This document shows, piece by piece, positions 42,436 to 64,000 of a DNA stretch of 64,000 bases (positions within the stretch are counted from its first letter, which is position 1; the number at the start of each line of letters is the position of its first letter). The position numbers were made by a program, and so were the translations under genes. A model generated the notes under the pieces. That model worked only from the letters and a program-made list of their open reading frames with translations. It ran no database searches and was not told the DNA's origin. The stretch comes from Pavona decussata (Eukaryota), in the NCBI GenBank assembly GCA_977016875.1, contig CDRNST010000233.1, forward strand, positions 5,146,001-5,210,000, written 5' to 3'.

Positions 42436-45400
42436 ATGGCGTACCGCGGACGGGACTTGTATAACGACGATTCCGCCGCAAACCTTCTTCGTTCTGTCAG
42501 ACAACAGGTGAGAAATTAGTTTATCATTTCTACATAATGTTGATGTTATTAGAATCACCATTTACCATAGTAGTTATTTCTGCATGTGTCGTATCCATTG
42601 CATTAAATTTTGAGGTCAAGACTGGTTGCTGTTAGCTGCTTTACTCCTTGAAAGTGGCTTGCGAGTTCTATTTCCTTTCTACTACCAGAGCGTTCATGTA
42701 AGCGATTACAAATATTAAAGATAAAGCTTGTAAACATGCTAAGTTTTTTTGGTCTTATTTAACAGGAAGCTCATTTTGAAATGCTTTCTCGAGAACTGGA
42801 ACAAGAGAGAAGAAATGTTGCCCAACAGCTGGAAAAGGTAAGCCGAAAGAAAGCATTTTATGTGTGTTTTGATTACCACTGATCCATGTAGCAGCGGTTG
42901 ATCCATAAGCTACGCAGTTCATGAGGGAAGGTTAGCTTAACTATCTCTGACAAACGCATCAATCACTAAATTATTTAACGTCATTTTATTTTGAATTGTA
43001 GTGTAAATATGGCTCAGAAACGGCGAGTGTCAGTTCGATGGGAAGGTAGGATTGTATAATTTGTATTTTATGTAGAATGAATTTCAGCTTGAAATTCTCT
43101 TTAAGGTCTTGGGCTTCAAAATTCGAGTTTACGACCGATGTGTAATTTTCACACCGTTTGTTTTAATGTTAAGTGTTTCTTCGATTTCATGCTTCCAGTG
43201 AATTACGACTTGTGCTACAAGTGCCTAATATATGTATTTAAATGTAAAATCTTATGGAATCAAAAGAAGAAGTAAGCTTTATTTGATTGCCGTGGTAAAT
43301 GTAAACCATTGCTCCGGGCTTTTTTAAAGAATTATTTGTTATGAAAATAATCCTTAATGGTTCCATTTTGTAAAGCTTGGCGTATCTATAAAATTACAGT
43401 CCTTATCTGATGTAGCTTAAAATGTATCGAGTTGGATTAGAAAGAGTGTTGAGCGTATTTTGAGTACACTGACAAACGTTTCGATTCCGAATGTTTTCAT
43501 ATCTTAATTTCCTGAACGGCACTTTTCTCACGTGCCACATTCAGTGGCGTTCTTTTTGAAATAATTTGTGCATTACAATTTATGGAAATCTCATCAATGA
43601 ATTTGTATTTATATTTTATCCGGGGGTAAAACCTCGAAAGACGTATTTAAATACATCTGTAGTTGCTGGTTTTTTTGCAGTGCATTCTTCATTAAAACGT
43701 CTGTTTACATGCGTGCATTGTTCTAGGATGGCTATTTGCATGTACCTTGAGTCCAGTTCTTGAAAAATTTACGTAACTTGAATTGATCAGGCTCTTGTGA
43801 ATAGCATTTGTTTGCGGTTGCTACTTCTGGAATGTTCCCAAAATGTTAAATACATGTAATTTGATTAGGTGTCAAATTGTTGACAGGTCAATGGCCAAAC
43901 TGATCATGACTTTCCATACGATCACAAGTTCTTTTCCAGCGATCATTGTGTCTACAGCGTTAACTGTTTTAAGTTGAATTTAATAAATGCTATCAGTGGT
44001 AAATTGAACTTTATAAATGGAATAAACGAACCTCCTTTTTTCAGTACAGGGGTTTATATGATGAAAGAACAATTGCAAGTGATTTTTTTTGCGGGTTTTG
44101 CTAGCTGACATACACACAACACTACAATAGTCAACAGGGATCAAATTGCCTGCTGTGATCAGTTGACCTGACAGAGGTTACAGGAAACAGATGCAAGCAG
44201 AATGATTTTAAAATGTTCCCTCTGTGGGATTCTTGTTACTGATCACCAAGTTATGAGAAATTCTTGTTTTGGTGTCTGTACCATACCATTATGGCATGAA
44301 AACATGACAAGGGGTTTATTTAGAGTCTGGTTTCTGTCCATGGCTTGACTGTCCATACCCGTTTCCTCTCCCCCTTCGTATGGACACCTGTCGTTAAGGG
44401 TGGGGGGGGGAGGGGGTCATAACGTATTACACCTGTTACGGCTGAATACCCATGGCGTGACTACTCACCTAAATGTAAATACCGGTAACCAGATGTTCTG
44501 GGTGAAATTGACAGTTGAAGCTGCATCTTACCCAAAAAGCAACAATTTTGAGTATGAAGCTCATGACCGATTATGGCTCAAAACTTGCTAACAGCTCTGA
44601 ACACCTTGCTATTACTGATGGCTCTTTTGCTCTGCTGTATGCATGCATCTGGACAGTTGTTTTCCAGTCCTTATGGAACCTGTAGTAAAGGTGCACAATC
44701 CCATGTAACTGATGAAAACTACCCGATCTGTTTTCACGTTCTATCCTCAGTTCATTCAAAATATAAGAGTTTCTTAATTTTTTTTCATAATTTTTGTGTT
44801 CTGAGTCATTTTTGGAATTTGATGGACCTATGGTTGACAGTGTAGTCTTTTCATGATTTCAAGAAAAGCAAGGCCTCTTAGGGTTTAAATGGTAGCAAAG
44901 TATTGCCTTAGTTTTGCATTTTTACCTAATTCATGAAAAAAACTAGGACATGCATGAATATGGGAGGAAAAAGGACTTCATCTTCCCAGGCTAGACACCA
45001 AACATTAATGTTCAAAATGTATATGATTCAAATAACATATTTTTAAAAGGATTTGTGCACCATATCAGGGTTCTGACAAACTGTGTATTCTTGATGAGCT
45101 TATCAAGGTCATCAGTGGCCATGAATTTATGACATCAATTATCACCAAGCATTAATTAACCTTCCTCTCTACAGCAGTAAATCTGTTGCTTCATTTGAAA
45201 CAAATTTGCAATTGTACAACATGTATTTTTTCAGAGATTTTGACCAAATCAAAGTTAACAAGAAGCATTGAAAACACCAATTTCCCATATCATGGATAAC
45301 TACTGCATTAATTTGTAAATTCTTATTTTGATCTTTTCCCAACAAATAAACCACATCTTGCGTGTCTAAACATTAACCTTTCCTTATCTTTAGGTAAATT

Positions 45401-48400
45401 ATATGCAAACTTTTGGCCTTAGCTTCGTAATGGTGACATGTATTTTTTGTCAACAGCTCTACTGATGATTCCTTTGTATGGCGCGGGAATAACGGACCAG
45501 GAAGTATTGGTGATGAACAAGATTTCTCAGACAACGAGAGCCAGCTGAGTGGATCAGCGCTTGTCGATTCCTGCCTGTGAGTTGGAATTACCTTAAGTGC
45601 ACTGAAAAGCACATCTTAACCGTTGCACTGCCACTAATTATCAAGTGAAGACCAACTAACTTTGAAAGGCAATGGTTTGTCAGGGCAAACCTTTGCAATT
45701 TTAAAATGTCAATATCTTTGTTTATTTCTCTATGGATAACAGACATTTGTTACTGTATTCCATGGAACTCACCATTTTGGTGGGATACATTGGATTTGGA
45801 TACTAACACAAACAAGAGTCTGTAAACAGTAATGTGCACTGGCAAAATTCTTGTACATCATCATATTATGATGAAGTTAACAAGTGTTGTTTTTTATAAT
45901 CTTTTCTTTGCAACTGAGTATAATTTTTTTCTTAAATATTGGCATAATGAACATGCATGTAGTTCCCTCCAAGTTATGTAAATATGTTTCAAAATGATTT
46001 ATGGACAACCTTGAAGAATATTCCCAAGAGGTTTGGAGAAAATTTGTATCACTTACTTACAGGGACTTAGTACTTATATAATTTGTACCTTTCTCAAAAC
46101 AGCATTATAAATAGCTACATGTAATAGCAATGAAAAATGGGGCACAGTATTGATCAAATCCCAGTGTTGTGATCCCGTGTTAACATGCCAAGACTAAAAT
46201 CCCAGTATTCAGAAATGTATGCATGTATTAAGTAAACATGAACAGATAGACAACCCAAATGTTCCCAATCATTTCAAAAGGCATAGAATTAATGAAAATG
46301 TGTTCTTTGGGGAACTATCCATCTCCTTACTTTCTGCGAAATTTTTGGCTTTTGAGACCAATCATCCCCCCGTCCCCCTCCCCCTTCAGAATTTAAAATG
46401 ACATTCCTTGGGGTGGCTGTGGGATATTTCCGAGAAGCACATAATAATTTAATGTAATTGGCTCAGGCTCATTGTTTGGCTCATTATAAAGGGTAACTTT
46501 ATCTGTTCTTTTGAGTTTTTGACCTGTGAAATCTTCCTATCTTAACTATCATGGGAGAAAGTGGTATGAACAGTTTAGTTGTCATTCAACAAGGATTTAA
46601 CAGCTCAAGCCCCTACCTTCTGAGTTATGGAGCATATAGGACATTTCTTTGGCAAACCTTTGAAGCTACTGATGCTGTCATTGAAGCTTGCTTTCATGTT
46701 TTATTAAACTGTGTAAAAATATATTGAATTTTGTTGTAAATGTTATCTTCAGTATACATTTATTTCAATAAATCGTATGGTATAATTTTGCATGGTGCAC
46801 AAATGATTTTATCTTTTCTCATGCTATCTAAACATCCACTAAATTTGTTGAAGTCTTAAGCTGTGGTTAAATGTTTATGCAATAATTCAGTTGAAAAACC
46901 CAAACATACTCACATGCGTTTCACAAATTATATTAATAAAAAGAAATTTCTGGTAAATTTCAAATGAATAAAATGAACCCCATGTAGCATTACACTCAAA
47001 TGTAACTTCAACTTTGGGTTTGGATTAACAGAAATTTTATTTTCCTTTTATAATTTGTTCGTATTTTGTACTATTCGTCTGTTAGAATTCATTTTTGAAT
47101 GCTACAGACAGCGATTTCGTTGTTGTATTTTGTGCTTTAAACTGAAACAAAAAAGTTAACAATGAAAAGCTTTTCCTAGTGAGAAGGTTTTCATCCAGAG
47201 TAACACATAATATGTATGTGTGTTAAGACAATGCATGCAGAGGATTAGAATATGATATCAAGGACACATGGTGGCAACCTGTGTGTTCAAGAATGATCCA
47301 TGAATGATTACGTCCGATGCCCTCAGGGCAGACCGTGTCAAAATTTTAGTCACCTTCCTTTTTTTTCCTTCCTCATAGTCACAAATTCCAATAAATAAAT
47401 TAATTGAACCTGGATTAAATTCTGTTCTCTCCTAGAGGGGATATTTTTGTCTTCTATTATTCTTATTGTCTTCAACAAAAATGTCCCAATCAGAATCCAT
47501 TATCTGCTCGTATGTCAGAAAATTGACATATTGAGCAGATAATGGACATTCAACTGTTGATTTGTAAAAAGGATAAAATATCACATTTTGTCGTTGACTG
47601 TTTTAGTATAACTAATATTGTCAGAGTTGTTATAAAAAAATATTGAGCTATATACCATATTCTTTTTTTTTTCTTTGTTAGGTGGTAAGTTAGAATAATC
47701 TCCAGGTTGTTCATGTAAAATTCCCTTTCAAAATTTATGATGGAATTGATTATTTGATTAAAGTTGCCTTAAGTGGCCAGAATATTTATTTATTATTCAA
47801 GCTCTTGGTTCAAGAGGGGTATACTATGTGCATTTTGGCCTTGAAAATTTCTTTTGCTTCAGCAGCTCAAGGCTTTTTGGCATACAGACTGGATAGAGTT
47901 GATTTAGAGCAATTTATTGTCAATGATTTCTATTCCAAAAATCAAAATTCTCCCCTTGAACCAAGGCCTTCAATTATTGTTCTGGGAAGGTATAAACTAA
48001 CAGTTAAAATTCTGCACATTTTGTATGTTATTACTGTACATTCTTGTGAAAACATGAATTGTCCATGGAAACATTTATATTTGATGAGTGGCTATGGTTT
48101 AACATCAATTTTGCCATGATTGTATTTTTGGGGATAAAAACAAAAGGAAAAATTCATTTGCAGTAATTTCAATCTGCAGGATCAAAATCTCCCAACAGCT
48201 TTTGATTAAAGTTATTATTAATAATAAATTATGATGATAAATGTTTTGCGATATCAGATTTGACATGTAACTCAAGCATCTGACATTGTATACTTGTGGG
48301 TTATACAATGTCATCTAGTTGACATATGATCAATTGAAACTACATGTATTTTTGTGTAATCATGAATGTTGAAGAAATTAACTGCAATATGAACTGCACA

Positions 48401-50479
48401 TCAATAATATGTTATGTTTCCTTTCAGAAACTTTAATTGCTAGTTTTGTTTTATTTTCTCTGTTGTTACATTTACTCTCACTGCACAGATCTTTGATGGT
48501 TAGTGAAAATACCTATAAATTTAATGTATGTAAAGTTTAAAAAACATGTGGATATTTGCATCCTATACTGAAGACATGTTTCATTTGCCACACTGCCATA
48601 AGGAGAGTTGACACAGTTATCTTATTCATAAGGCAATGATTTTGTGTCAAATACATATTTGTGCCATTTTGTCCATTGTCAGAAGTTAAATTCATATTTT
48701 ACATGTTCACACGGGCCAGTGTTGTCATGGTTTATCTTGTGAGGCATATATTATAATTTTGTTCTTTTTTAGGACTATTCTGACCCTTTGTATTTTTGTT
48801 TTCAGGAAAGTACTTCAAGAGCGAGGCTTGTCTGACTCAAGGTACTTAATGATTTAATGGTATTTGTTCTCAATAAAAACAAATACTTTAAGTTTGAAAG
48901 CTATTGAACTGGTAGGGTTTTTTTTTTAGGAACATATTCTTTTTTGCTGCTGTAAACATTGACAGTATAAAAATTCATTCCTCTCTAGACTGTAGATATA
49001 AATTATGAAAGGCAACTTTTGGTAGTACAAGAAATCAGTAGGATTTCATGATATTAACTCTTACTCCTAGAATGATGTATAAAAAATGAAATATCAGGTT
49101 TTATAAACTCTGTAATTATACTATAAATTCAAAGCAACTAGCACTTAATAAGAATTTTATATGAAGAGTTAAAAGTTAAAATGGAGTATATGAATTGATA
49201 TAATATTTAACCGTCTCGGGGTGAAAAGGTTAAGAATTATTAATACTGACATCAAAAACACAAATGGCAGACAGTCTAGCGCAGCTCAAAGTTGAAACAG
49301 GTGCGAAAATTGTCTCAGGTAGTCATATGCTACTTATGTCAATGTGATGTACTGTATAAGCTGCAGGGTGTACTTCACTGTATTGTGTTTTCTCTGGCTT
49401 CTCATCTGCTGCTGTCCTTTGAATATCCCTGAATCGGTTTCAGACTAAAAACACCATTCTGTATGTTCACACAATTATTGTGAATAAACTCTCAGGAGGA
49501 AGGACAAAGACGTGAGGTTTTAAAATAATGATAAGTCACTATATTGTTTGCTTTTCTTCGTATTGTTCAACGTCTGTTTTCACCATTTTCCGATGACCAT
49601 GATAAGATTTTGTTGTGCTCAGCTCAGCAGGAAATGCTCTATTTGCCCTTTCCTTGGACAATTTTCTTCATGGCGTGAGTTAATTATTCTAAAAGGAGGC
49701 CAAGGTTACCTTTGGAATGTCAAACAGCTTAGAAAAATTATGAAATAAATATTATAGGAATTCAGCAAACAAAACTAAGAATGAAGTGAATATTTTGTCA
49801 ATAAAGATTCCATAAGGTAAGCTCAATGTATTCCAAAATAGCTGCTTCATTGAGTCTTACACTTGAGTCACAACGAAATGATATGCAACTGGTAGACAGC
49901 ACACTGATAAGCAGTATAATTTGACAGATTTATATGAGACATTATCAGAAGAGTAACATACAACATTACATGTAAATATAAATATTTTTGCGTGGTTTAT
50001 AACTGTGTGGGGAAAGCAGATCTTGGTAAAGGTTATTGGAATCCAGAAATGACACAAGAGGTAACCTTGCATTTTTCAGACATAAAATTATTAAGCTTAA
50101 ATTTGAGGGAAAATGCCAAATGCCAAATTCGTATTTTAACATTTTTTGGAATAATTTTTAAGTTGCTTATAAATAATTATCTTTGAAAACATGTATGGTT
50201 ATGCCCAATTTTCTTTTTGGATTCCAATAGCCCTGGCTAAGATCTGGTTTTACTGCATAGTCATAAAGTGCGCTAAAATGCATGTCTCTTTGTAATAGGA
50301 GGTACTTATAAGTAATAAACCTCATTGTTTGTTGGGATTGGTTTCAGGGATGAGCAAGACCCTCTTTGCAACAGGAGTTTAATTGACGGTAAGAGTGCCA
50401 TAACAGTACCACGCTCAAATGCACTAATGAGTCAGGACTGGGAAAAGGATCTTATGGAAGCAGGTGGGTATAGGGCTGT

Positions 50480-50527
<48 letters not shown>

Positions 50528-53500
50528 TATTTATAACAGTGTTTTACAGGGTGCTCTCTCACTGCATGGTGGTTTTCAGAGAGGCCCTGTATATAAAAAT
50601 TACCAACCAATAGAGATTTAATTACAATAGTTAAAATCTACTCTGACTACTAGATACATATATAATAAAAACTTGACGTATAAATACAATATGTTAGGTA
50701 CGAAATTCAAAAAGGATAACATGGATAAATACGTAGTACATAGTAAAAGGAAACAGTGGTGGGTAAGATAGTCTTACGTTTTAAGCCACATGTTTCTTAA
50801 AGCTTCACATCCATAACAATCTTGCTTCTTTGTGAGTTAAATGACCCTACAACTGTCAAGATTGGCCCAAGAAATTTTTCAAGGGTATTCGGCTGTAACA
50901 GGTGTTAAGGGCTACAGCCCTTGTAAACTGACAGCTCTGGGCACACTATTGCATCTTACCTAATCTACTAGATTGTAAAAAACAAGCAGTCAAAATTCAA
51001 ATTTTAGACAACATTTAACATCAACCTCTCCCCCATATTTTCCCTGTAGTTCACTGGAATCAGAGGGAGCTTAATCCATTTGGCATTCTGTACTCAAATT
51101 CAACTTGATATCTGCAGAACAGCACTCTCCTGCTTTAACTGAGAGATGTTGCCATTTTGACTTATCATCAAATTCTAAGACGTGACATCAGTAGAAGTTT
51201 ACAGTGTTAATTATTGATGAGAATCTTTGTCCCAAGCATAGCATAAAAAAGCAGAGTATCTTTATTTTGGTAAATGAAAATGACTATATTGAAATGCCTA
51301 TCACAGTACGGAAAATAGGTCTCGTCAATTAGTTGCAACACGTTAAGTTTTGTTTTTCATTAATTTTTCGACTTTTTTTGTGTGTGTGTTACTAGTGATT
51401 TCTCTACCTCCCCTAAATTCTATTTGTCCTGTCTTTCATGATTGTAATAACTGTTAGTAAAAATACCTAGATTAGCTCTCACCACCTGCAGGCCAGTCTC
51501 TCTTTTTTGCTAAATTTTTGAGTTTTTGAATAAACTTGAACTTGAAACTTGAGACTTTCATTGGTGCTTAAAAACATTTCAATTGATTGTTTTTTTTATG
51601 CAGAGCTTACCCCTGGGCAAACAGTCAAGAAAGTTGTGACGAGAACAGAAGTTCGCACATTAAGAACAGTCGATGGCAAAGTGATTCAAGATACATATGA
51701 TCCTGGCAGCACTCAAACAACGGTTGAACGATACACACTAGATAACAGAGCCGTCAATGGAAATACACCAAGAGCTTTAACAAAGCAGTATGTGCCAGGC
51801 GATGAATACCGGTCACCTGGGCGCCGTGGACCTGGATCGCAGTCTTCTGTTGAGGATTACCGAAGACCCTACAGTCCTGGAAGCCAGAGTGGTCCTGGTT
51901 CAGAGGGTCGTCGGACACCCACTGCTAACAACCTGTCTGGACACACATCAGATGGCTACCAGACACCAACAGGTACATTGTTGTAATGCTCTTCATTTTA
52001 TCCCACTCTTCATTGTGGTGTTCACTGTTCTGGCGCCCTCTAAGTGTGCAGTTACCCGACAATAACGTAATTCACCATTGCCATGGCATTCATTTTTAAA
52101 CACAGAATTAAATAAAAAGCAGAGTTCATGAATGGAATCATAGTTAGATCTTGATGGATTCAGCAAAAATGAAAAGTTTTTAACTTAGATCCTTCTCAAA
52201 CTCAAGAACTATTAATAGAAGTTTCACTTTTGTTATTTTTTAAACGAAATGCATTGACGGCAGGCTATTACTACCCGATTACTATTTCAGTGTATGACAG
52301 GTCTTATACTAGAAAATAGAGCTACATGTAAAGGACCGGTGTTTTGTTGCCCATAAAAAGAACTTTAGGCTGCAAATTGTTGAGCTTGTTCATGGACAGT
52401 TTAGACCACAAACTAAAAGATGCGATTTAAAAAAAACCTCTGAGTGAATGTCAGGTCACAACTCTGTACAACAGCGAGAAGTCAAATTATATGAATTTGC
52501 TGAGTGCTGGAAAACCTCTTAAACCTCAATAAAATGTCCGGCTTGTGACTAGTGCCAAATCTTTAGGTTCTGTGTGTTTTTTCTGTTTACTACCCTAACT
52601 GTATTTCTTAGATTTGGTTTAAAGCAAAACACTCAAGACATTAATGATGATATTTCAAACACTCTTGTAACAAAAGATTAAATAAGTGTATAACATGTTT
52701 CTCTTATCCTTAGTTAAAAGCATTTTTATTATCAGATTATTAGTAATACTCAGTTGGCTTCTGGATAGTTACTTTTGTTCCAAAATAATTAAATTTGTTG
52801 ACAAGATATATATCTCTAACCTTACTTCTTTATTGATATGCCAATTATCAGTCAGAAAACCTCCTTCTTCACAAAAATCCACTGAATTGGGCAGTTACAA
52901 GTATCCATTTGTATTATGAGGCCATGCAATCAATTAATTTAACATGCTTCCAATTCATTTCTCCCCCTCACTGTAAAAATTCGTATTAATCATGTCTTCT
53001 TTTTAGGTTCAAGGCATTCTTCTCAGTCTAGTTCTGTCAGCGCTAATCCATATCGTAACAAAACTCAATCGCTACCTCGCACTTCATTGTCAACACCTGG
53101 TGGTGGAACACCATCGTCTTCAACAACAATCCCACGATCATCAAGCAGTTCTGGACGATTAAGCAGTAAGTTATAATTTGATAACATTTAAAAAATCAGT
53201 TACAGTTAAACTGTTAGTTCTCTAAAAACAAATGTAAGTTAAAGGACTTACCACACAACCAAAAGCTTCAGGATGACACCTTGTAGTCACCTTCTGCAGC
53301 TTAATAAATAGCACCACAAGAGAGTTCAACTGACAGCTGCTACATGCAAGTGCTTTAATTTAATTGGTCACACTTTAGAATCTTATCTAGTACAGCTGTA
53401 TACTCTTCACTTTGCATATATGGTTGATTTACATGTTCCTTGAACAACACAAAAAAACACTACCACAAGAGAGTCCACTAGTTGCAATCGCTTTTGTTTT

Positions 53501-56500
53501 TTTATTCCATACTCCAACTTGAACTGTAAAACACTTTAATTTACAATCTAAGTACATGATTCATTTTTTTTTTACTTCAGAAGAGAAATCCAACCTTGGG
53601 TGAATTTGTCTCCAGCAGTGTAACGTTATTAAATATTATTTGCTTCTCTTTCAATAACCTTTTCAAACAGGCTCAAGCGATGAGCAGATCAATGATTCAA
53701 TCCTTTGCATTAAGCCATTTGATATACAAAAGTTATTGGTACCAATTGTGTGGAATTTTGATGTTTATTTTAAAACAAAAGCTTGCGTTCACGATCTTGG
53801 TAAAGTGCTTTCAGTATGTACATGTAGTCAAAATGATTGTGTTCAAAATTAAAATACAATTCAATTATCCAGCTACACTTTAACAAATTTCAGACTATTG
53901 GCACAATGAATACAATTATTTTTTTGTTTTCTTTTTTAATGTACAAACAATATTTACTCTACAATGAAGAGCTGTGTTTTGTTAAACAAAAACATTGTTA
54001 AAGATTTTTTTGAGCACATACATGTAGTTTTACACACCCATTTCTGTCAAAGTGTGGTTTGAATGTCATTGGACTAAAGACAATAATATTAAGACCTTAA
54101 ACATTTTGAAAATCTCTGTCTGCTTGGTGATAGAGAAAGGAAGATAAAATAATAACTAAAAAGAAATGCTAGTGGTTGGGTTAAAATGTGTCTCTGATAT
54201 TCATTGCCTTGATTAGCAATTCCTTGTTAATCCAGGTGTGTTTCTTAATCAAAGGTGTTTATTTTTTTTATCTCATCTGTGACTTTTGTAAATTATTAAC
54301 GACAGTAGGAAATCGCGTTGGGATTCAAATTTGAAGGGACATGGATATGTGGAATACGCAGTCGTTGTTTATGAGGTTTTTTCCTTTGGTATTGCCAGAT
54401 GAAAAACCCAAAGGTATTTCACTGTGTTGGTTTGTTATTTTTCATCGAAACTCTCTTAAGAGTTTGGATTCATTCAGTAGATTTTACAGATGCATGAAAT
54501 ATTTGATGTATGACATACATACAATGCAGCTTTGTTGAGTTTTGTTTTTTAGCATTAAAGTCTTACTTGAAATTTATGTTTCTTCCAGTGTAATATACAC
54601 TTAGAATTTATTCTAAAGCTATGAGAACTTAAGTGCTGTACTTGTTATTTATAATAAGTACTTCTTTTACCATGTATTGAACTTCACTGTGTGGCAATTT
54701 CATAATAAACATGGCATGGTAGTAAAGTCATTTTCTCTTTAGATTCTTCAGAAAGTCCATATATTTTATGCCCTATTTTCTTGTGTACACGTGTAGCTTG
54801 ACATTTTTGGAAAAACTGTTGAACTTATAATACATTGCTATGATGACTGTGTCAGATTTTATGTATGGAAATTTGAAGCTGCTAATTCAATTGATTAAAA
54901 GTAAAACTTGCAAATAACAGGTGCAAAATGGAGTTAAGATTTTTTAGTTTCAGGGACAAACACGTAATGTAAGAAGAATTATGGTTTAATTTTAATCAAG
55001 ATTAGGTTAGGGACCTTCCTGTGGAACTGTTTATTATTTCTGCTGGGTAAATATAAATGTTGAGTCAGCTACTAATGTAGAGGCTACAGAGGGGTTCTAT
55101 ATAGCATGGACAGGATTGCTTTTTTGGAAATTATTTTTTTTTACTTTCTTTGTGGTATGCATTTTTATAGCCCTATATTTGGGTTGGACATTATCCATTG
55201 GCATACATGACATATTAATGGTTACTGCAATGCATTGTGGGTAAATCCAACACAGAGTGGTCTGCAGATATATTAATGATGGGATAGTACTGTGACTTTG
55301 TATTTAAATTAAATGCTTTTTATACCAAATGTGGCCAGTAAACAAGGTTTTTGAACATAAATTCTACGTTTGCTCCACATTGTCTCTCTTGACCCAAGTG
55401 TATAAATGGGTACTGGCGACACATTGCTGGGGGTAATCCTGTGATGGACTAGCATCTCATCCAGGTGGGAGTAGCAATACTCCCCTTCTCACAAAGTTCG
55501 CGTTGGCGTTAACCGCAAGGGAGCATCCTTGGTCCACTTCTATTTCTTATCTACGTAAACGACCTCCCACACTGCTTGGAGTACTGCAAAGTTGTCATGT
55601 ATGCAGACGACACTGTGTTATACTATAGTGGGAAGAGCTGCCACGAAATTGAATCGCATCTAAATGCCGACCTTGGCAAGTTAGGACATTGGTTTGATAA
55701 CAATTACCTAACTTTAAACACGTCTAAATCTAAGTTCGTACTGTTTGGCAGCAATCGCAAATTGCAAAGTTGCCATGATGTCAAGCTTGTTATGCATAAT
55801 GTTTGCCTCGAGAATTCAGATTCAATCAAGTACCTTGGCGTGAAAATTCACAAGAACATGACTTGGAATGAGCAAATCGATTCATTAATTACCAAAGTGA
55901 ATCAAAGGATTGGCCCATTGAGACGTGTCAAGCCTCTGTTACCAGTAGATGCACGGATTACACTGTATAACACTTTGATTAGTCCCCTTTTCTACTATGC
56001 TGATGTTATCTGGGGTGACAAGGATAACACTACACTTATGGGCGATTTGCAGATTCTGCAAAATAAGGCAGCAAAAGTTATCCTTGATTTGCCTGGCTAT
56101 GTCTCATCCACCGATGCACTCAAGTCACTTGGCTGGCCAACCTTGTCCCAACGTCGCCTTGTACATAGATATATGATCACTTTAAAGTATATTCATGGAC
56201 TTGTAGATTATAATTTTAATATTCTTAAGAACAGCGACATCCATTCCTATAATACCCGGAGAAAGAATGATTTCCGTCTTCCACGAGTACGAACTAACTA
56301 CGGAAAGAAGACACTCCTTTACCAGGGTATTAAGGAATGGAACCTTTTAGAACAGTCTTACAAAGACATAAAATCGTTTTTAATTTTTAAGCAACGTATC
56401 AAAGAGCGCGTTTTTAGCTAGTTTTTAATTCTTATTTCTTATTTTTATTTCTTACCGCCGACTTTGTATTTTCTACTTTTAAATAATTGTAATTTTTAAA

Positions 56501-59500
56501 ATAATTGTAAGTTTTAAATCATTTCTCAATCTACAGGGCCCCACTGAATATCACTTTCGTGATGTGGGCTCCCTGTATAAAGATTGTTATTATTATTTAT
56601 TACTATTATTATTATTATTATTACTCCTAGTAGCTTCCTGCTACAGAAACTGGGCTAATCTCCAGCCCTGTGGGCCACTTAGGCTCATAGTGTGACTTAA
56701 ATCCTAACCTTTTTCAGCATAAACACCTGTCTGAACAAATTTTAGAATGAACAGGTATTTTGGAAATTAATGTGGTCAGACAATATTTGAGGACCAAGCA
56801 CTGGTAGGAGTGATCAATTGCTGAATAGTTGAGAAACAAACCCTTTAAAGGGACCAGAAATTAATTCAAGTTAATGCATTTCTCATTTTTTTCCAGCCAC
56901 GTACAACCTCAGTATAAAAGTTGGCGACGTCAAAGGCTCAGGCACTGATGGTAATGTTTACATTCAGCTGTTTGGTGAACGTGGAAATACGGCAAAGATT
57001 CAGCTTAGGCAAGCTGGAGACACTAGGAATAAGTTTGAGAAAGGGCGGACGTACAAGTTTACAGTGGACACTGTTGATATTGGCAAGGTAGTGAAAATTG
57101 TAAAAGTAACAAATAAATAATGTTTCCAAGGTTGCTCAAACTTGATCATTTTTCTCACGGTTCTGTAGCATAGGTGTGGATTGGGAAGTTCCCAAGGCTC
57201 TCTCTCTTTTGCCATGTTGGTGATGATGTCATCTGCCCATGCAAAATCTGTGGAGGATGCCAGATATGTGTCCTAAGATCCATTAATTTGTTGATTGTTC
57301 CTTTCAATCTTGACTCCAATCTGTATTACAAGTGCGTTCTTTCTGCGTCAAAGGCAATAAATTTCAATTTTGGAAGTTTGTAATGTCAGTAGGTACTGCG
57401 AGTTTCTTCCTATTAGTATAGTTATAGGTAGTCATAAAAAGACTAAATTTAAAGTTATAGTCACTGTGATTATATTATTCAAAAGAGATTTTCTGAAGCT
57501 GAAGCTTGCCAAACGGCTGTTAACTGTTCAAAATAATTTGATGCAACTTAAGATTTCTTGTTTTGGCATGGTTTGCAGGTTGATAGAATCAAGTTAAGTC
57601 ATGACCATACAGGTTATGGATCCGGTTTCTTTGTGGAGGAAGTTGAAGTGGAGGTTCCTGCTCGTCAGGATAGAGTCAAGTTTCCGTGTCGCTGTTGGCT
57701 GGCGCAGGATGTTGACGATGGTAAAATTGAGAGGGAGATGTTCGCAATAACCCCTTTACCAAGTAAGTCAACAAAATGGTTTCTTGTTTGCTTCTTTGTT
57801 AAAGGGGAAGTATCACGGAAATTTGATGTCATCTCAAAACCCAAAAATGTTTGTCAACAACAGAAACAGAAACAAAAAAAATAATTGTCAAGTTTTGTTA
57901 TAAATTATCACCCCATTAGTGCCTCTGGCCAGAGACAGAGTAGGTAGGAATGGATTGAATCTTGAAAAATGTAAAGCTAATGTTTTTCAAGTTTTCGTTT
58001 TTTTGTTTCCAAAATGTGCTAGAACAGAGTATGAGTTGTTCCTGTCAAGAATTTAGTTGATTGCTCTCCTTTCGTTGTTCTATAGAATTATTTTGTAGCA
58101 AAGTGAAGGTCTTATTTCACCATTTTTAACAAAAGAGGTCAAAAATCCCATGATACTTTCCCTTTAAATAAGTAGTAAAACACTGTAATGCCTTTATTTG
58201 GGTTGGTGCAATTACTGACATTTAAAATGCTGTCATAGTTTTTTTGTGGCCAAAGAAAATAAAAAGGAAATTTAAAAAATAGAGATAAATTTGGTTGAAT
58301 TGTTTGAAGTATGAAGAGATCATTTATGTTCCATGTGATGCGTTTTGGTCAAAGTTTGTCCCAAATTATGTTTACTTCAATTGAACATATATTTGTACAT
58401 GCTGAATGTTATTTCTCAGCCACACAACTATGGTACAGCAAATAAAGGACACGCACAACACATGTTCTGACAACAAGAACAAGTACATGTACATTTAATT
58501 GCAACTGAAATGAAACAGAAAATTTTGTTACTTAAAAGCACCATAATCTCACAGACTAGCTGGGTGTCGGTGGGTGGGAAAGCTTTTGTCTGATTGGGAA
58601 GAAGACAAAAACTGGATGTCATAACCTAGCATGAAAGTATGGTCTCACTTGTCATTCAGTGTGGGAACCTTGTGTCTTGAACCCTTTTGGAGGCTCAGGC
58701 AGCATGAAGACTATTTTTATCATTTTTTTTGCTTAAATTCTTATTTCAGACACCTCCTACACAATGTCAGTCAAACTTGGCGATGTTCTTAGTCCAGATA
58801 CCAATCTTTACGTTCAGCTGTTTGGAGAAAAAGGGGAAACAAGCAAAATAATGCTGCGACCTGTTGGTTCCTCACTTAACAAGTTTGAGAAAGGCAGAAC
58901 GTACAAGTTTACTGTTGAGACTGTGAATATCGGACGGGTGAGTCATTAAGTTGATCAGTCCATTCAGTCACTTGTTTTGTTAGTCAGTCAGTCAGTCAGT
59001 CAGTCAGTCAGTCAGTCATTCATTCAGTCAGGCAGGCAGGCAGGTAGTCAGTCAGTCAGTCGGTCGGTCGGTCAGACAGCCAGTATATCAGGCAGCTGCA
59101 GGCAGTCAGCCAGTCAGTCAATCAGGATTCAGTCAGTCAGTCAGACTGTCTGTCTGTCAGTCAGTCAGTCAGTCAGTCAGTCAGTCGGTCTGTCATGTGG
59201 TCAGTTGGTCTATCAGCCAGCCAGTCAGTCAGTCAGTCAGTCAGTCAGTCAGTCAGTCAGTCGGTCGGTCAGACAGCCAGTATATCAGGCAGCTGCAGGC
59301 AGTCAGCCAGTCAGTCAATCAGGATTCAGTCAGTCAGTTAGTTTTGGTCAGTCAGACTGTCTGTCAGTCAGTCAGTCAGTCGGTCGGTCTGTCATGTGGT
59401 CAGTTGGTCTATCAGCCAGCCAGTCAGTCAGGCAGTCATTTGGTCAGGCAGTCAGTCAATCAGTCAGTCAGTCAGGATGTCTATTTAATTTTCTGCAAAT

Positions 59501-61265
59501 ATTTCACTTTAAGATTGACAGACTGCGGATTGGCCATGACAGCAAAGGAGATGGGAAGGGCATATTTGTGGAAGAGGTAGAGGTAGCTCCAGCTGAAGGA
59601 GAGCGTGCTATCTTTCCTTGCTACTGCTGGCTGGCTGAGGGCAAAGGTGACAAGAAAATGGAGCGAGACATACTGCCAGGTCAACCAAGACCACCACGAC
59701 CAAGTGAGTGTTAAACTGACATTTTTTAGGAGAGATCTATAACCTTCATTTTGTTGTGAAAATAAATGTTTTCTCTAACTATCAACATTTATTTTGGAGT
59801 ATTTTCATGCCAAGGATGTGTGTAGAGTACACAGTGGTCCAGAAGTGTGCAAACTTTGCATTGAAGTTGTAGCATTGCTTAACTCCAGCAGATGTAACAT
59901 TACCTTTTACTGATAGGGACTTTATTTCTCGACAGATACCTCATATCATTTAGCAGTGAAAACTGGAGATATGCTGACAGCTGGTACAGACGCTAACGTG
60001 TATTTCCAGTTGCTTGGTGATGAAGGAGAAACCGAGAAAATCCAGCTACGCCAAGGTGGTAAAGCAGAAAAGAGATTTGAGAAGGGGAGAGTTGATAAGT
60101 TTATCGTGGAAACTGTGGATGTTGGAACGGTATGTTAGTTCTTAATTTATTTGTTCACAGATCTAAGGTCTTTTTATGCTGACATGTTTTGTTGTTATGT
60201 ATCTGAAGAGGCAGCAGTTGCTTATGTCAGAGTGAAACAAAACAAGAAAAGAAACTATGGTTCTTGTTATGTGATCAACTTAATTTTTTAATATGACCAT
60301 TACAAGTCAGACCTTACAAGACAAGTGAAGATTTACTCTCTCTTATTGACATATGTATAAGGTTCCCTCTTTTTATTAACAAAACCAGTTCCTGCTGGCA
60401 ACTAGAGAGACCCTGGTAACAAGGACCTTCTACACACTCTTAGCCCTTTTTAAAACCCTTGAGGCAAAATGACATTTTGTCCAGATCCAGGACTACAAAC
60501 TCAATGTCCATGTATGACTTGTGAGTGTATTTAATAACTGATATAATTATAAATGAGAAAACTAATGGCTTTGAGGTAAATGGGCTTAAAACGTAAAACT
60601 TTAAAAGTTCAAAAATGTCCCAATCCTCGTGTATATTAGGTATACCGCTAAACTATATAGGTTATTTTGCATTTCTCCACATGTTCATTAATGTGAGAGC
60701 TGTCTTAAGACCCACAACTGCTAGGGGGAAAAAGTTGAAAAGTTATGGGGGTGGTCAACCGTATCACATATGGGAAGGGGTTACGTTCTCATCCTATGAG
60801 AGATGAGTAGATCTTCACAAGACCATCTTGGTGTCAAAAATGCATAGAAATCTGTCAAATCTTGACAGAGTTATAGTATTCTGTGCCAATTGGCACTCTT
60901 AGGGATTAAAGAGTTAAGCTGGTTGGAAAATGAACACTTGTTCGCTGTTCTAACAGGTTCAAAAGTTGCGCATTGGACATGACAACAATGGATCAGCTCC
61001 TGGATGGTATCTCGAAGAAGTCGCTGTTGATGTGCCTGCCCATAATGAACATTTCATCTTCCCTTGCCATCGATGGCTTGCCAAAAATGAAGATGATGGC
61101 AAAATAGAGAGAGATCTAGTGCCAGGTATTCAATGTTTGCTTGGCCATAAGTGTCAGAAGATAAAATGTTGTTCAATTCAATTTGTTTCTTTTTCCTTGT
61201 CTCTGTAAGTTGTAAGCTTATTTAAGATAGAGGAAATTAGCTGATTAAGATCGATCGATTGATGG

Positions 61266-61348
<83 letters not shown>

Positions 61349-63697
61349 CAGTCAGGCAGTCAAGCTTTCTTGAAAGAGGAGAATTAAAAAGAACATAGCA
61401 CTTAAAAGGCTGTGGTCTCCAGGCAGCCAGTCACAAATTTTCTCTTGGTCTTTGAAGCTTGCCAAGAAATGTCACTCAGCTAAACCTACCAGCTGTTAAC
61501 TTCCCAAAACTTGATGATTTTCTCTGCCTGTGAACAAATCCTATGACTTGCTCAAATGTTGCTATTTTTTATTCCATGTTGAGTTTTTTATTAATATTCT
61601 GTGATATCAGGTTCCCCTGTCAGTTCTGGTGCAACTTCTCCAAGCAGGACTACGATTACGACAACCACAGAGCAAACAACCAGAACAGAGAGTCAGAAAG
61701 TCCCACCTCCTGTTGCTAAGAAACCTGATGAACGATATGGTACCCCCACAAAGAAGGTCATTACTGAAGAACTAAGATACACTACAGTGCCACCGCCTCA
61801 GAAAACAGTCATTGAGGAGATGCGTTACACCACACCCCCTGCCAAAAGAACTGTCATTGAGGAAGAATATAGGTTAGTAGCCTGCCTAATCCAAGGGTTT
61901 TTGTTTTACAGCGTACAAAATGCTTCTATGCAGCAATTGCTTACTTGCAGGGTTTCCACACTTGGCACAGAACTGTCTCACTGTGAAAATTGCATACCTT
62001 TTCAGGCATTATTTTGGAAATTTATGTTCTGTGTTTTTTAATTTCAGATACTCTACCCAAAGAAAAGAGCCAGCCCCCACACCTCCCCAGAGAAAAATCA
62101 TTGAAGAAAGGATGGTGATGAAAGAGACTCCCCCGCCTGTGCAGGGAGCCCCACCCATGAGGCCAGCAGAACCCAAACAGCGCATCACACAGGAAGAACT
62201 GACGGTTGAAGAAGTACGCAGACAGGACTACTCTACACCACCTCCTGCAAATGAGTATCAGTACCATGAGGAAATGCTTCCACCGCCTGATGAATATCAT
62301 TTTGAGGAGAAGAGGACGGAGATATCTGCACCTGCTCCAGAGGCCATGGACAGCAGAAAAAGTGAGTTTATAGAATTATATCCTGTGTAGCAAGCGTTTC
62401 TATTAGGGTTTTGTGTCTTTTTCAGTTTTTTACTGCGCGAAAAACCCGCAAAAGCCCACGGAAAAGCTTGCTATGCAGGCTAATAGAATTGCTATAAAAG
62501 CAACAGTGTCCAGGTTCGGTTGTAGACAAAATCAGGGTGGGGCAGTGTTCCAGGTAACTGTCAAAGTCAGGGAGTCAAGGAAGAATTTTGAAGGGTCAAC
62601 CATTTGGTTCTCTCCAAATCTTCTTCAGTTTACCAGTCCATTCATTTTGTTGGGTCAGGAAGCCAGCTTTCTTGGGTTTTTGATCTGAGACGCATCTCTT
62701 GTATGGAACACTGGTGGGGTGATCTGTCTCTTCTCAGAGCACTGATGTCTTCTAAATGCCGGTTTCCCTAACTTGTGCAATGTTTTGTGTTCTCTTTTAG
62801 TTGTTTTGCTGTAGTGTTGTAAAAAAGCTGAAAAGGTCGCCATGTTTGCAGAGTGCTTTTCCAAGGGCTGTTGTACTGGAATACGAAAAAAAAAAAAATA
62901 ACATCTGAATATAGGAACTATGACAACCGTTGTAAATGTAATACTTTATATCAATTATAAAAAGTCATAACGTACATGTGAAAGAAAAGAGATGTGTAAC
63001 TGGTGATAATTTGTTTTACTCCTGATTATATTGAAAAAAAATCGAGGAAGGATGCAAGCTAGTTTCTCTCCCTTTGTCAAAATTACATTTGTTTGTCTGT
63101 TGTTTTGTTGAATTTTTAATGTATTCTTTTACTCTTACAAAACAAAACTGAAAACTTTGTGAGCTTATACAGCCCTCGTTGTTTGTGGATTTGTTGTTCA
63201 TTGTTCGGTTTATCTAGATAACTTCTAACGATCTGTATTTTTTCTTGCAGTTGTTGCGTATCAGCTGTGCCTTAAAATGGGAGATGTGCTTGGTGAAGGA
63301 ACAGAAGGAAATGTGTTCATTCAGCTCATTGGCGACAAGGGCATGACAGAGCAAATACAGCTACGACAAGCTGGAAATTCCAAGATACGCTTTGAGAAAG
63401 GAAGAACCTACAAGTTCACTGTTGAAACAATCGATATTGGAAAAGTACGATTTCAACAATTTAAAACTGTTTGAGTTCTGTGGATCTGTAGTTGGGTCAC
63501 TCACATTTCTCCTTTGTTTTAGATTGAAAAGGTAAGTGTCAGTCATGACAGCCGGCAGCCCACCACAGGGTGGTACTTGGAGGAGGTCAGTGTTGATGTG
63601 CCATCACGTGGGGACCACACCGTATTTCCCTCACACTGTTGGTTGGCTTCAGGGAAAGGTGATGGCAAAATTGTCAGAGACTTTGTCTCAAAACCAT
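42436..63697 (+). CDS. p120/delta-catenin-family gene with multiple PLAT (LH2) domains inserted in its N-terminal region (partial; ~991 codons in window, continues past 64000)
   Basis: Exons 42436-42507, 42766-42837, 43002-43045, 45457-45576, 48806-48841, 50348-50388, 51604-51972, 53007-53165, 56897-57087, 57579-57762, 58750-58937, 59514-59703, 59936-60129, 60957-61125, 61611-61872, 62048-62361, 63251-63444, 63523-63697. All GT-AG, phase-consistent and stop-free. The N-terminus [49 protein letters not shown]...LVDSCLKVLQERG parallels CTNND2/PKP4 as I recall them ([47 protein letters not shown]...LVDSCIRSLQESG). TVKKVVTRT resembles p120. ARM repeats are not reached in the window. Confidence 0.8.
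49980..50281. mobile_element. Palindromic MITE, family copy 2
   Basis: atatttttgcgtggtttataact ... agtcataaagtgcgctaaaatg; a diverged relative of 37528-37812. Confidence 0.65.
50478..50830 (-). mobile_element. L2-like LINE 3' remnant with (AAAT)n tail
   Basis: (tatt)n at 50478-50526 lies next to acagggtgctctctc...gagaggccctgt. This stem-loop resembles the acagggccc...ccctgt 3' hairpin of the L2 copy at ~56533-56577. Confidence 0.55.
55372..56690 (+). mobile_element. SINE body split in two by the LINE insertion (55372-55483 and 56628-56690)
   Basis: ...gtataaatgggtactggcg...gggggtaatcctgtgatggactagcatctcatccagg...agtagcaatactcc [LINE] tagtagcttcctgctacagaaactggg... The joined halves read as a SINE body I recognise as common in metazoans. 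Confidence 0.6.
55484..56621 (+). mobile_element. 5'-truncated L2/CR1-group non-LTR retrotransposon (RT C-terminal half)
   Basis: [19 protein letters not shown]..., [27 protein letters not shown] and KEWNLL motifs (ORF to 56421), with a frameshift just before PQGS. It has a 3' hairpin, a (TAT)n tail, and a 6-bp TSD TACTCC (55478-55483 / 56622-56627). Confidence 0.92.
56897..57762 (+). other. PLAT domain 1 (two exons)
   Basis: [29 protein letters not shown]...FEKGRTYKF...DIGK / VDRIKLSHD...[19 protein letters not shown]; LOXHD1-type PLAT consensus. Confidence 0.9.
57803..58163. mobile_element. Kolobok-type MITE (TTAA TSD)
   Basis: ttaa|aggggaagtatcacgg ... ccatgatactttcccct|ttaa; purine-purine terminus with TTAA duplication. 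Confidence 0.8.
58750..59703 (+). other. PLAT domain 2 (two exons)
   Basis: [10 protein letters not shown]...[13 protein letters not shown]...FEKGRTYKF / IDRLRIGHD...FPCYCWLA...ERD. Confidence 0.9.
58960..59476. repeat. (TCAG)n degenerate microsatellite with ~197-bp internal duplication
   Basis: gtcagacagccagtatatcaggcagctgcagg block at 59071 and again at 59268, embedded in tcag runs. Confidence 0.9.
59936..61125 (+). other. PLAT domain 3 (two exons, most canonical)
   Basis: [31 protein letters not shown]...FEKGRVDKF / [20 protein letters not shown]...[20 protein letters not shown]. Confidence 0.93.
61266..61348. repeat. (ATCA)n microsatellite
   Basis: About 20 perfect units. Confidence 0.95.
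62379..62482. mobile_element. Short TAGCCTG-family hairpin element with ~9-bp TSD
   Basis: atagaatta|tatcctgtgtagcaagcgtttc ... aaagcttgctatgcaggcta|atagaattg. Confidence 0.75.
63251..63697 (+). other. PLAT domain 4 (two exons)
   Basis: [29 protein letters not shown]...FEKGRTYKF...DIGK / IEKVSVSHD...GWYLEEV...FPSHCWLA...DGKIVRDF. Confidence 0.9.
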
Positions 63698-63800
63698 GTA
63701 AGTAACATTGATTTTGTACGAAAACCAACCAGAACCTTGAGATAGCCTGCAAAGCAAGCATTTCTGTGAAGTTTTCTGCACTAAAAAGCCTACTTCCGTA

Positions 63801-63944
63801 TAGCCTGCGTAGCAGTCGTTTCCGTTTGCTTCAAGCCAAGCTGGGCAAGCGCGCGAGGGCATTGGGCAAAAAGTTTTGCCCAATGCCCTCGCGCGCTTGC
63901 CCCGCTTCGCTTGAAGGAAACGGAAACGACTGCTACGCAGGCCA
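63801..63944. mobile_element. Near-perfect 144-bp hairpin element with 9-bp TSD
   Basis: acttccgta|tagcctgcgtagcagtcgtttccg ... cggaaacgactgctacgcaggcca|acttccgta. The centre gcaagcgcgcgagggcattgggcaaaa-ag-ttttgcccaatgccctcgcgcgcttgc is perfectly paired. Confidence 0.88.
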
Positions 63945-64000
63945 ACTTCCGTATTACAGATGCGCGCGAAATGGGGTCCCAATTTCCGCGCGGTGAAACA

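Follow-up and report, generated by a model that had tools for sequence, protein, structure and literature searches.

A p120/delta-catenin gene of the coral Pavona decussata with six PLAT domains ahead of its armadillo domain

The locus described here raises the question of whether a p120/delta-catenin and an array of LOXHD1-type PLAT domains can be parts of one and the same protein. Catenins of the p120 family determine how stable classical cadherins are at the cell surface, and their domain plan, a regulatory N-terminus followed by armadillo (ARM) repeats, is regarded as conserved across animals. LOXHD1 consists of tandem PLAT repeats only and is required in hair-cell stereocilia; in other proteins, PLAT domains bind membranes. 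Exons of both kinds lie on the + strand of a stretch of 64,000 nucleotides from the coral Pavona decussata (GenBank assembly GCA_977016875.1, contig CDRNST010000233.1, positions 5,146,001 to 5,210,000; G000:C233:5146001-5210000 in our numbering), which we call the window, and a preliminary description had joined them into a single reading frame. Our analysis makes it likely that they belong to one gene, the anthozoan orthologue of p120/delta-catenin with six PLAT domains, and we propose that its product both binds cadherin and acts as a tether to the membrane or to a partner.

The exon model was rebuilt from open stretches, splice sites and phases, so that frame continuity is a matter of phase bookkeeping only, and the next 80 kb downstream of the window was taken as well (L003; L003:7728 equals C233:5216728). 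Starting from an ATG at 42436, 18 exons on the + strand form one open, stop-free frame of ~1016 codons within the window, where all introns are GT-AG and the phases match at every junction. The 18 GT-AG exons and the single stop-free frame of the preliminary description stand, its length of ~991 codons being close to our count; the four PLAT domains that it had placed from 56897 onward are present in the window, but the array of the whole gene has six. The junctions 53165->56897, 61125->61611 and 62361->63251 were recovered exactly as first drawn. The whole gene comprises 32 exons and ~1898 codons over ~35 kb, the window holding its 5' two-thirds. All 31 junctions are phase-compatible, and the introns are GT-AG except for one with a GC donor. 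The encoded domains follow one another as a coiled coil with delta-catenin regulatory motifs, PLAT1-3, a disordered linker of ~190 amino acids and PLAT4-6, after which a complete p120-type armadillo domain and a tail ending in DSWV and a stop are encoded on the same strand and in phase. The armadillo exons for which the preliminary description had pointed to the next window are thus there, p120-type, with the DSWV end. Only ~10 residues separate the end of PLAT6 from the start of armadillo repeat 1, and 584 bases of genome separate the two exons. The parts of the gene are as follows (window coordinates unless L003 or L013 is given; E, catenin exon; D, linker exon; A, ARM exon).

42436-42507, + strand: E1, ATG and first half of the coiled coil; GT donor after 42507
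42766-42837, + strand: E2, second half of the coiled coil, a phase 0-0 cassette with AG/GT sites
43002-43045, + strand: E3, GSET..SSM delta-catenin motif, recognized by motif and splice sites
45457-45576, + strand: E4, acidic stretch with LVDSC at its end, recognized by motif and splice sites
48806-48841, + strand: E4b, microexon of 36 bases (12 codons) with AG/GT at its borders, located via contig L031
50348-50463, + strand: E5, regulatory region, with a blastn match in L031
51604-51972, + strand: E6, TVKKVV motif and Ser/Pro/Gly-rich regulatory region, phase 1-1
53007-53165, + strand: E7, Ser-rich, final catenin exon ahead of the PLAT array, phase 1-1
56897-57087, + strand: PLAT1, first half-exon (Pfam PLAT, E=4.6e-13)
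57579-57762, + strand: PLAT1, second half-exon (Pfam PLAT, E=9.5e-6)
58750-58937, + strand: PLAT2, first half-exon (Pfam PLAT; covered by the cDNA-like contig L014)
59514-59703, + strand: PLAT2, second half-exon (Pfam PLAT; L014)
59936-60129, + strand: PLAT3, first half-exon (Pfam PLAT; L014)
60957-61125, + strand: PLAT3, second half-exon (Pfam PLAT; L014)
61611-61872, + strand: D1, disordered linker with repeated V-I-E-E-x-R-Y-T-T-like motifs (L014)
62048-62361, + strand: D2, disordered, Pro-rich linker (L014)
63251-63444, + strand: PLAT4, first half-exon (Pfam PLAT, E=9.6e-9; L014)
63523-63697, + strand: PLAT4, second half-exon (Pfam PLAT; L014)
L003:2171-2361 and 3003-3180, + strand: PLAT5, beyond the window
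L003:4273-4466 and 5527-5689, + strand: PLAT6, beyond the window
L003:6274 to the stop at L013:4809, + strand: ARM exons A1-A10, beyond the window

Transcript sequences from related corals carry the same fusion. Contig L014 (Ga0099817_1108273), picked out from among metagenome contigs by an alignment of the ARM exon that is conserved best, is intron-less, comes from a related coral and shows 80-92% nucleotide identity. Its single frame of 1423 amino acids (aa) begins in the middle of PLAT2, takes in PLAT3, the linker, PLAT4-6 and every ARM exon, and ends at DSWV. The contig matches each of the predicted exons in turn, the borders differing by no more than a few bases, and the exon with the GC donor is among them. 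The natural open reading frame (ORF) of L014 served as a long query for full-length relatives, and the exons were searched singly. This yielded P0356 (1896 aa; transcript contig L030, logan:SRR22097839_11289), which extends from the coiled coil through the armadillo domain, P0353 (1736 aa; transcript contig L031, logan:SRR12053382_10114) and the full-length relative P0358 (1927 aa; from a 6-kb Logan contig). The sequences closest to this coral are the SRR12053382 Logan transcript contig and Porites lutea. All 31 exons tested (E4b was left out) map in order onto P0356, with E1 at residues 1-24, E7 at 278-327, PLAT1 from 329 and the last exon, A10, at 1720-1895. P0356 and its contig L030 are the single transcript with coiled coil, PLAT and ARM that had been named beforehand as the supporting result, and both the E7->PLAT1 (53165->56897) and the PLAT6->ARM1 junction are present in orthologous mRNAs. 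With three independent intron-less contigs of related corals (L014, L030 and L031) carrying the fusion, its transcription as a single mRNA in related corals is shown.

These transcripts bear directly on whether the PLAT exons are an independent LOXHD1-like gene that lies in a catenin intron on the same strand and shares its frame by coincidence. The intron between E7 and PLAT1 would have room for one, being 3.7 kb long and holding a retrotransposon fragment, and PLAT arrays are abundant in the genome. Against this, PLAT1 begins at an AG acceptor in phase 1 behind an open stretch with no ATG, PLAT6 lies only 584 bases from ARM exon 1, and spliced contigs from three data sets join E7 to PLAT1 and PLAT6 to ARM1 (L014 from mid-PLAT2 onward). 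Since the L030 protein spans E1 through A10 in order, we regard the nested gene as refuted and its probability as close to nil; it is ruled out by transcripts that join catenin, PLAT and ARM exons.

The first 244 bases of L031 (L031:1-244) show no match to E1-E4 and contain stops, and the ORF called in this contig begins at a Met in E5. This 5' end could reflect an alternative promoter that gives an N-terminally short isoform, as in vertebrate p120, or an assembly artefact.

The N-terminal exons identify the catenin part of the protein. E2 and E4 align to the N-terminus of P0013, a canonical delta-catenin-like protein (E2, 60% identity to residues 5-29 by tblastn; E4, 53% identity, tblastn E=1e-5), and E4b continues the delta-catenin segment LVDSC-L-x-V-L-x-x-R-G-L present in both P0013 and P0356. 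Identity to P0356 amounts to 88% for E1 (residues 1-24), 96% for E2 (25-48), 100% for E3 (49-62), 95% for E4 (64-102) and 72% for E5 (116-154), whereas E6 was compared with coral orthologues in general (83-89%). E7 falls at residues 278-327 of P0356 and 125-175 of P0353, directly ahead of PLAT1. E2 is missing from Nematostella isoform X3. An N-terminal coiled coil and the delta-catenin regulatory motifs, the features of the p120 subfamily, are therefore found in E1-E6: the catenin-type coiled coil in E1/E2, GSET..SSM in E3, LVDSC in E4 and TVKKVV in E6, as had been proposed.

The armadillo domain points to the same family over its full length. Aligned to the structure of human p120 (3L6X), the ARM region of the orthologue scores 376 bits (E=3e-111) with both halves covered, far above PKP1 (212 bits) and beta-catenin (65 bits), so that it is nearer to p120 than to plakophilin or beta-catenin, and all ten ARM exons of the genome align in order to P0013 and P0356. 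Six residues of human p120 (Q391, H392, K401, K444, W477 and N478) are said, in work by Ishiyama of 2010, to be the critical contacts with the cadherin juxtamembrane region. All six are conserved in the alignment of the orthologue to 3L6X, and most of them are also visible in exons A1, A2 and A4 of the genome. The p120 residue numbers were counted back from W477/N478, and the numbering of Y389, Q391 and H392 in a published account (PMC5968619) agrees with this count. On the side of the ligand, the classical cadherins of corals and Nematostella retain the p120-binding motif (PMC4890752; PMC4948710). The last exon closes with the PDZ-binding motif DSWV and a stop, an ending shared by L014 and two unrelated metatranscriptome p120 proteins. 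We take a C-terminal DSWV PDZ ligand to be a mark of the delta-catenin/ARVCF/p0071 group.

The coral protein thus has in common with the vertebrate delta-catenin group (CTNND2, ARVCF, PKP4/p0071; also CTNND1/p120) the coiled coil, the GSET..SSM, LVDSC and TVKKVV motifs, the p120-type armadillo domain, the cadherin-contact residues and the DSWV PDZ ligand. It differs in ~930 extra residues, six PLAT domains and the linker, between the regulatory region and ARM1, and so departs from the p120 plan in which the ARM repeats are the only globular domain. A precedent for a lineage-specific globular array N-terminal to a p120 armadillo domain is C. elegans JAC-1, a p120 homologue with N-terminal fibronectin type III domains; these are not PLAT domains, and JAC-1 represents an independent event in another lineage.

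The inserted domains are PLAT domains by sequence and by predicted fold. The Pfam profile PF01477 matches all eight half-domain exons in the window, five of them singly above the curated cut-off of 23 bits, and the full domains of the orthologues form six stretches with 327-400 bits in total. An AlphaFold model of PLAT1 (predicted local distance difference test score, pLDDT, 86.7) has eight strands arranged as a beta-sandwich, and Foldseek places it with the PLAT domains of 5-lipoxygenase and coral 8R-lipoxygenase (E=7.8e-10, template modelling score (TM) 0.77). The best match of PLAT1 among the sequences of solved structures is again the PLAT domain of coral 8R-lipoxygenase (E=1.6e-11); for this allene oxide synthase-8R-lipoxygenase (PDB 2FNQ, 3DY5), the closest solved match, the Foldseek TM is 0.74-0.77. 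The title of PDB entry 2FNQ describes activation of the enzyme by calcium by way of a C2-like domain. In 8R-lipoxygenase the PLAT domain is the single targeting domain of an enzyme, whereas in the coral catenin it forms a six-fold array in a scaffold, with Ca2+ binding putative.

Among PLAT domains, the repeats are of the LOXHD1 type, in line with the earlier assignment: the best matches that are not fusions themselves are LOXHD1 orthologues, and identity to the Trichoplax LOXHD1 repeats is ~40% (39-40%). Both sets of repeats share a G-H-D signature and the tail signature C-x-x-W-L..D-D-G-K-x-E-R-E-L, and overlapping Pfam hits to DUF7755 are common to both. The best matches to the L014 protein are ten fusion proteins, and the next 110 in rank are PLAT-only proteins, nearly all named LOXHD1. 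In contrast to LOXHD1 proteins, which are PLAT-only at 2000-2500 aa, the coral has six repeats (13 in a paralogue) within an armadillo catenin, and the catenin N-terminus and ARM domain stand in the same ORF and transcripts as the array.

The fusion occurs widely among Anthozoa. Proteins combining Arm and PLAT were found in Porites lutea (1870 aa), Oculina patagonica (1897 aa), Acropora palmata (LOC141875648; 1898 aa), Nematostella vectensis (LOC5511245; 1961 aa), the octocorals Dendronephthya gigantea and Xenia sp. (1610-1642 aa) and Stylophora (2463 aa; 13 PLAT domains plus Arm). By Pfam, six PLAT domains plus Arm are present in all five proteins of the six-PLAT type that were tested (P0356, P0357, P0354, P0359 and P0361), and in two related genome assemblies PLAT exons lie directly upstream of Arm exons. 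The six-PLAT design is common to Hexacorallia and Octocorallia, which suggests that it is older than their split. As the preliminary description had allowed for, automated annotations already hold the PLAT-Arm architecture, under the names "uncharacterized", "hypothetical" or "lipoxygenase homology domain-containing protein 1-like". The LOXHD1-like name given to the fusions of octocorals and Stylophora is a best-hit label and not a statement of orthology.

Outside this group, PLAT was absent from all 18 p120-family representatives scanned with Pfam and from ~240 arthropod and bilaterian p120-family hits for which Pfam lists had been precomputed, and the p120 clusters of the Atlas contain Arm only. 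When proteins of 352-1120 aa were searched with the ARM domain of the coral, no anthozoan p120 free of PLAT came up; the best matches were one partial coral fusion and then bilaterian CTNND2. An ARM-exon search of a representative library returned only genomic exon fragments and bilaterian and ctenophore p120, but it also missed known anthozoan fusions, so its silence is uninformative.

Searched with the coral ARM domain, the whole genome contains two p120-type loci only, both behind PLAT arrays. The second PLAT-armadillo gene lies at G000:C233:4357770-4402359 (+), ~790 kb upstream on the same contig; it is the orthologue of the 13-PLAT Stylophora protein, its PLAT domains are split at the same exon position, and no coiled-coil homology to E1-E5 was found in its N-terminus. 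The genome holds at least 105 PLAT matches in all. Tandem, intron-poor frames of 420-580 aa with one complete PLAT domain each are clustered on contigs C60 (6.18-6.47 Mb), C214 (4.07-4.21 Mb) and C6 (0.63-1.01 Mb), and contig C27 (0.906-0.938 Mb) carries a multi-exon PLAT array with no ARM matches, which is possibly the true LOXHD1 gene.

The kinship with LOXHD1 makes it conceivable that the protein has left the adherens junction and works mainly as a LOXHD1-like scaffold at the membranes of cilia or hair bundles, its ARM domain serving some other partner. Besides the LOXHD1-like repeats, this would agree with the conservation of PLAT1 beyond that of the ARM domain (see below) and with the report of a jellyfish gene called LOXHD1 in hair cells (PMC11250803); best-hit naming could hide fusions under that name, as NCBI calls the octocoral fusions "LOXHD1-like". 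We nevertheless consider this reading quite unlikely, given that the p120 cadherin-contact residues are conserved, that the genome has no other p120-type gene to serve its cadherins, and that a separate PLAT array devoid of ARM matches exists on contig C27.

The modules of the protein differ in constraint. The ratio of nonsynonymous to synonymous substitutions (dN/dS) was determined for this genome versus two transcript contigs, with dS at 0.75-2.2 across modules. It is 0.000-0.004 in PLAT1, 0.016-0.061 in PLAT2-6 and 0.035-0.051 in the ARM domain, as compared with 0.14-0.15 in the linker and 0.11-0.16 in the C-terminal tail (last exon, A10). Purifying selection is strong on each of the six PLAT domains and equal to that on the armadillo domain. 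The first half-exon of PLAT1 is 100% identical in five coral orthologues, 94% in Nematostella and 87% in octocorals, and PLAT1 identity to this coral is 93-94% in Nematostella and 69-87% in octocorals, where the central ARM exon A5 reaches 73% and 43-46%, respectively. PLAT1 is the best-conserved and most constrained module of the protein. Because it is near-invariant over the anthozoan radiation, it probably carries a specific binding interface or partner.

The exon phases bear on how the array arose and on whether it is always included. Each PLAT domain is split across two exons at one shared position, each cassette has the phases 1-0-1, and the cassettes, the whole PLAT block, E6 and E7 are all phase 1-1 units. 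As all cassettes are phase 1-1, exon shuffling is a natural origin. The V-I-E-E-x-R-Y-T-T-like motif of the linker is reminiscent of the TVKKVV region in E6; this would fit an origin in which the PLAT cassettes entered a regulatory region that was already there, as opposed to a fusion with the end of a foreign gene. The same phases would permit E7 to be spliced to ARM exon 1, in which case a p120 free of PLAT domains would be the main product and the PLAT forms minor or cell-type-specific: E7 ends and ARM exon 1 begins in phase 1, the 1-0-1 cassettes can be skipped in frame, and isoforms do vary elsewhere in the gene (Nematostella X3 lacking E2, and the different 5' end of L031). We judge this unlikely. 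The transcript contigs (L014 with its frame from mid-PLAT2) and the annotated orthologues keep the six-PLAT array, and no skipping of a PLAT cassette was observed in either; the search at 352-1120 aa gave no anthozoan PLAT-less protein; and dN/dS of the PLAT domains equals that of the ARM domain.

Several features of the surrounding sequence were recorded along with the gene. The GC-AG intron follows ARM exon 2, with its donor at L003:7728 (C233:5216728; AAG|GCAAGT), and L014, L030 and L031 all match this exon up to exactly the GC donor. A retrotransposon is represented by a reverse-transcriptase fragment (Pfam RVT_1, E=2.9e-14) at 55513-56418 (+), inside the 3.7-kb intron that separates E7 from PLAT1. 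The intron after PLAT4 contains, at 63800-63945, an element of ~145 bases resembling a miniature inverted-repeat transposable element (MITE) that occurs at dozens of genome loci; both strands match at the same places, and the element is therefore palindromic. Two microsatellites produce spurious long open frames, (AGTC)n with ~122 copies at 58982-59475 in the PLAT2 intron (SQSV repeats) and (ATCA)n with ~21 copies at 61266-61348 after PLAT3 (INQS repeats). Further upstream, a single open frame of 1913 codons at 27641-33382 (+) has no Pfam match at E<=0.001.

Taking these results together with what is known of p120, we propose the following role for the six-PLAT catenin. Its ARM domain would bind classical cadherins in their juxtamembrane region, as it does in bilaterians. 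When p120 sits on cadherin, ARM1 is expected near the inner leaflet, and the adjoining PLAT6-PLAT4 would be placed there too. The array may thereby add a second attachment, either to membrane lipid, possibly in a Ca2+-dependent manner, or to a membrane-protein partner, and the catenin would become a multivalent tether at the cortex. Five points weigh against this account of the gene and its product or limit its reach. Binding of lipid, of Ca2+ and of cadherin is in each case a prediction from sequence. For the tryptophans with which 8R-lipoxygenase inserts into the membrane, a sequence alignment shows no obvious counterparts in PLAT1. Coiled-coil exons are lacking in the octocoral models and in the paralogue with 13 PLAT domains. 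Isoforms with in-frame skips are possible, since the PLAT cassettes, the block, E6 and E7 are phase 1-1. Finally, we infer splicing in this genome from orthologous transcripts at 80-90% nucleotide identity.

No description of an architecture combining PLAT with a p120 armadillo domain was found in the searchable full-text literature, and papers on catenin evolution and on the cnidarian complex (PMC5968619 and PMC4948710 among them) contain no mention of it. The sequences themselves are already in public annotation; what is new is their recognition and interpretation. Labels such as "uncharacterized" or "LOXHD1-like" can lead studies of cnidarian adhesion and of hair-cell genes astray. In this coral, the only p120-type genes bear 6 or 13 PLAT domains, and PLAT1 is under tighter constraint than the domain for cadherin binding. 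For a major animal lineage, this alters what is meant by the "cadherin-catenin complex". More speculatively, and as an idea that we would hold only tentatively, every anthozoan p120 might be a PLAT fusion that anchors the cadherin-catenin complex to the inner leaflet or to a partner there, perhaps under the control of Ca2+. By the Rosetta-stone argument that this idea includes, free LOXHD1-type PLAT arrays and p120 catenins would, if it is true, cooperate in membrane-proximal cadherin complexes elsewhere, hair cells included. Nematostella, a genetic model, has the same gene (LOC5511245), and the question can be tested there directly.

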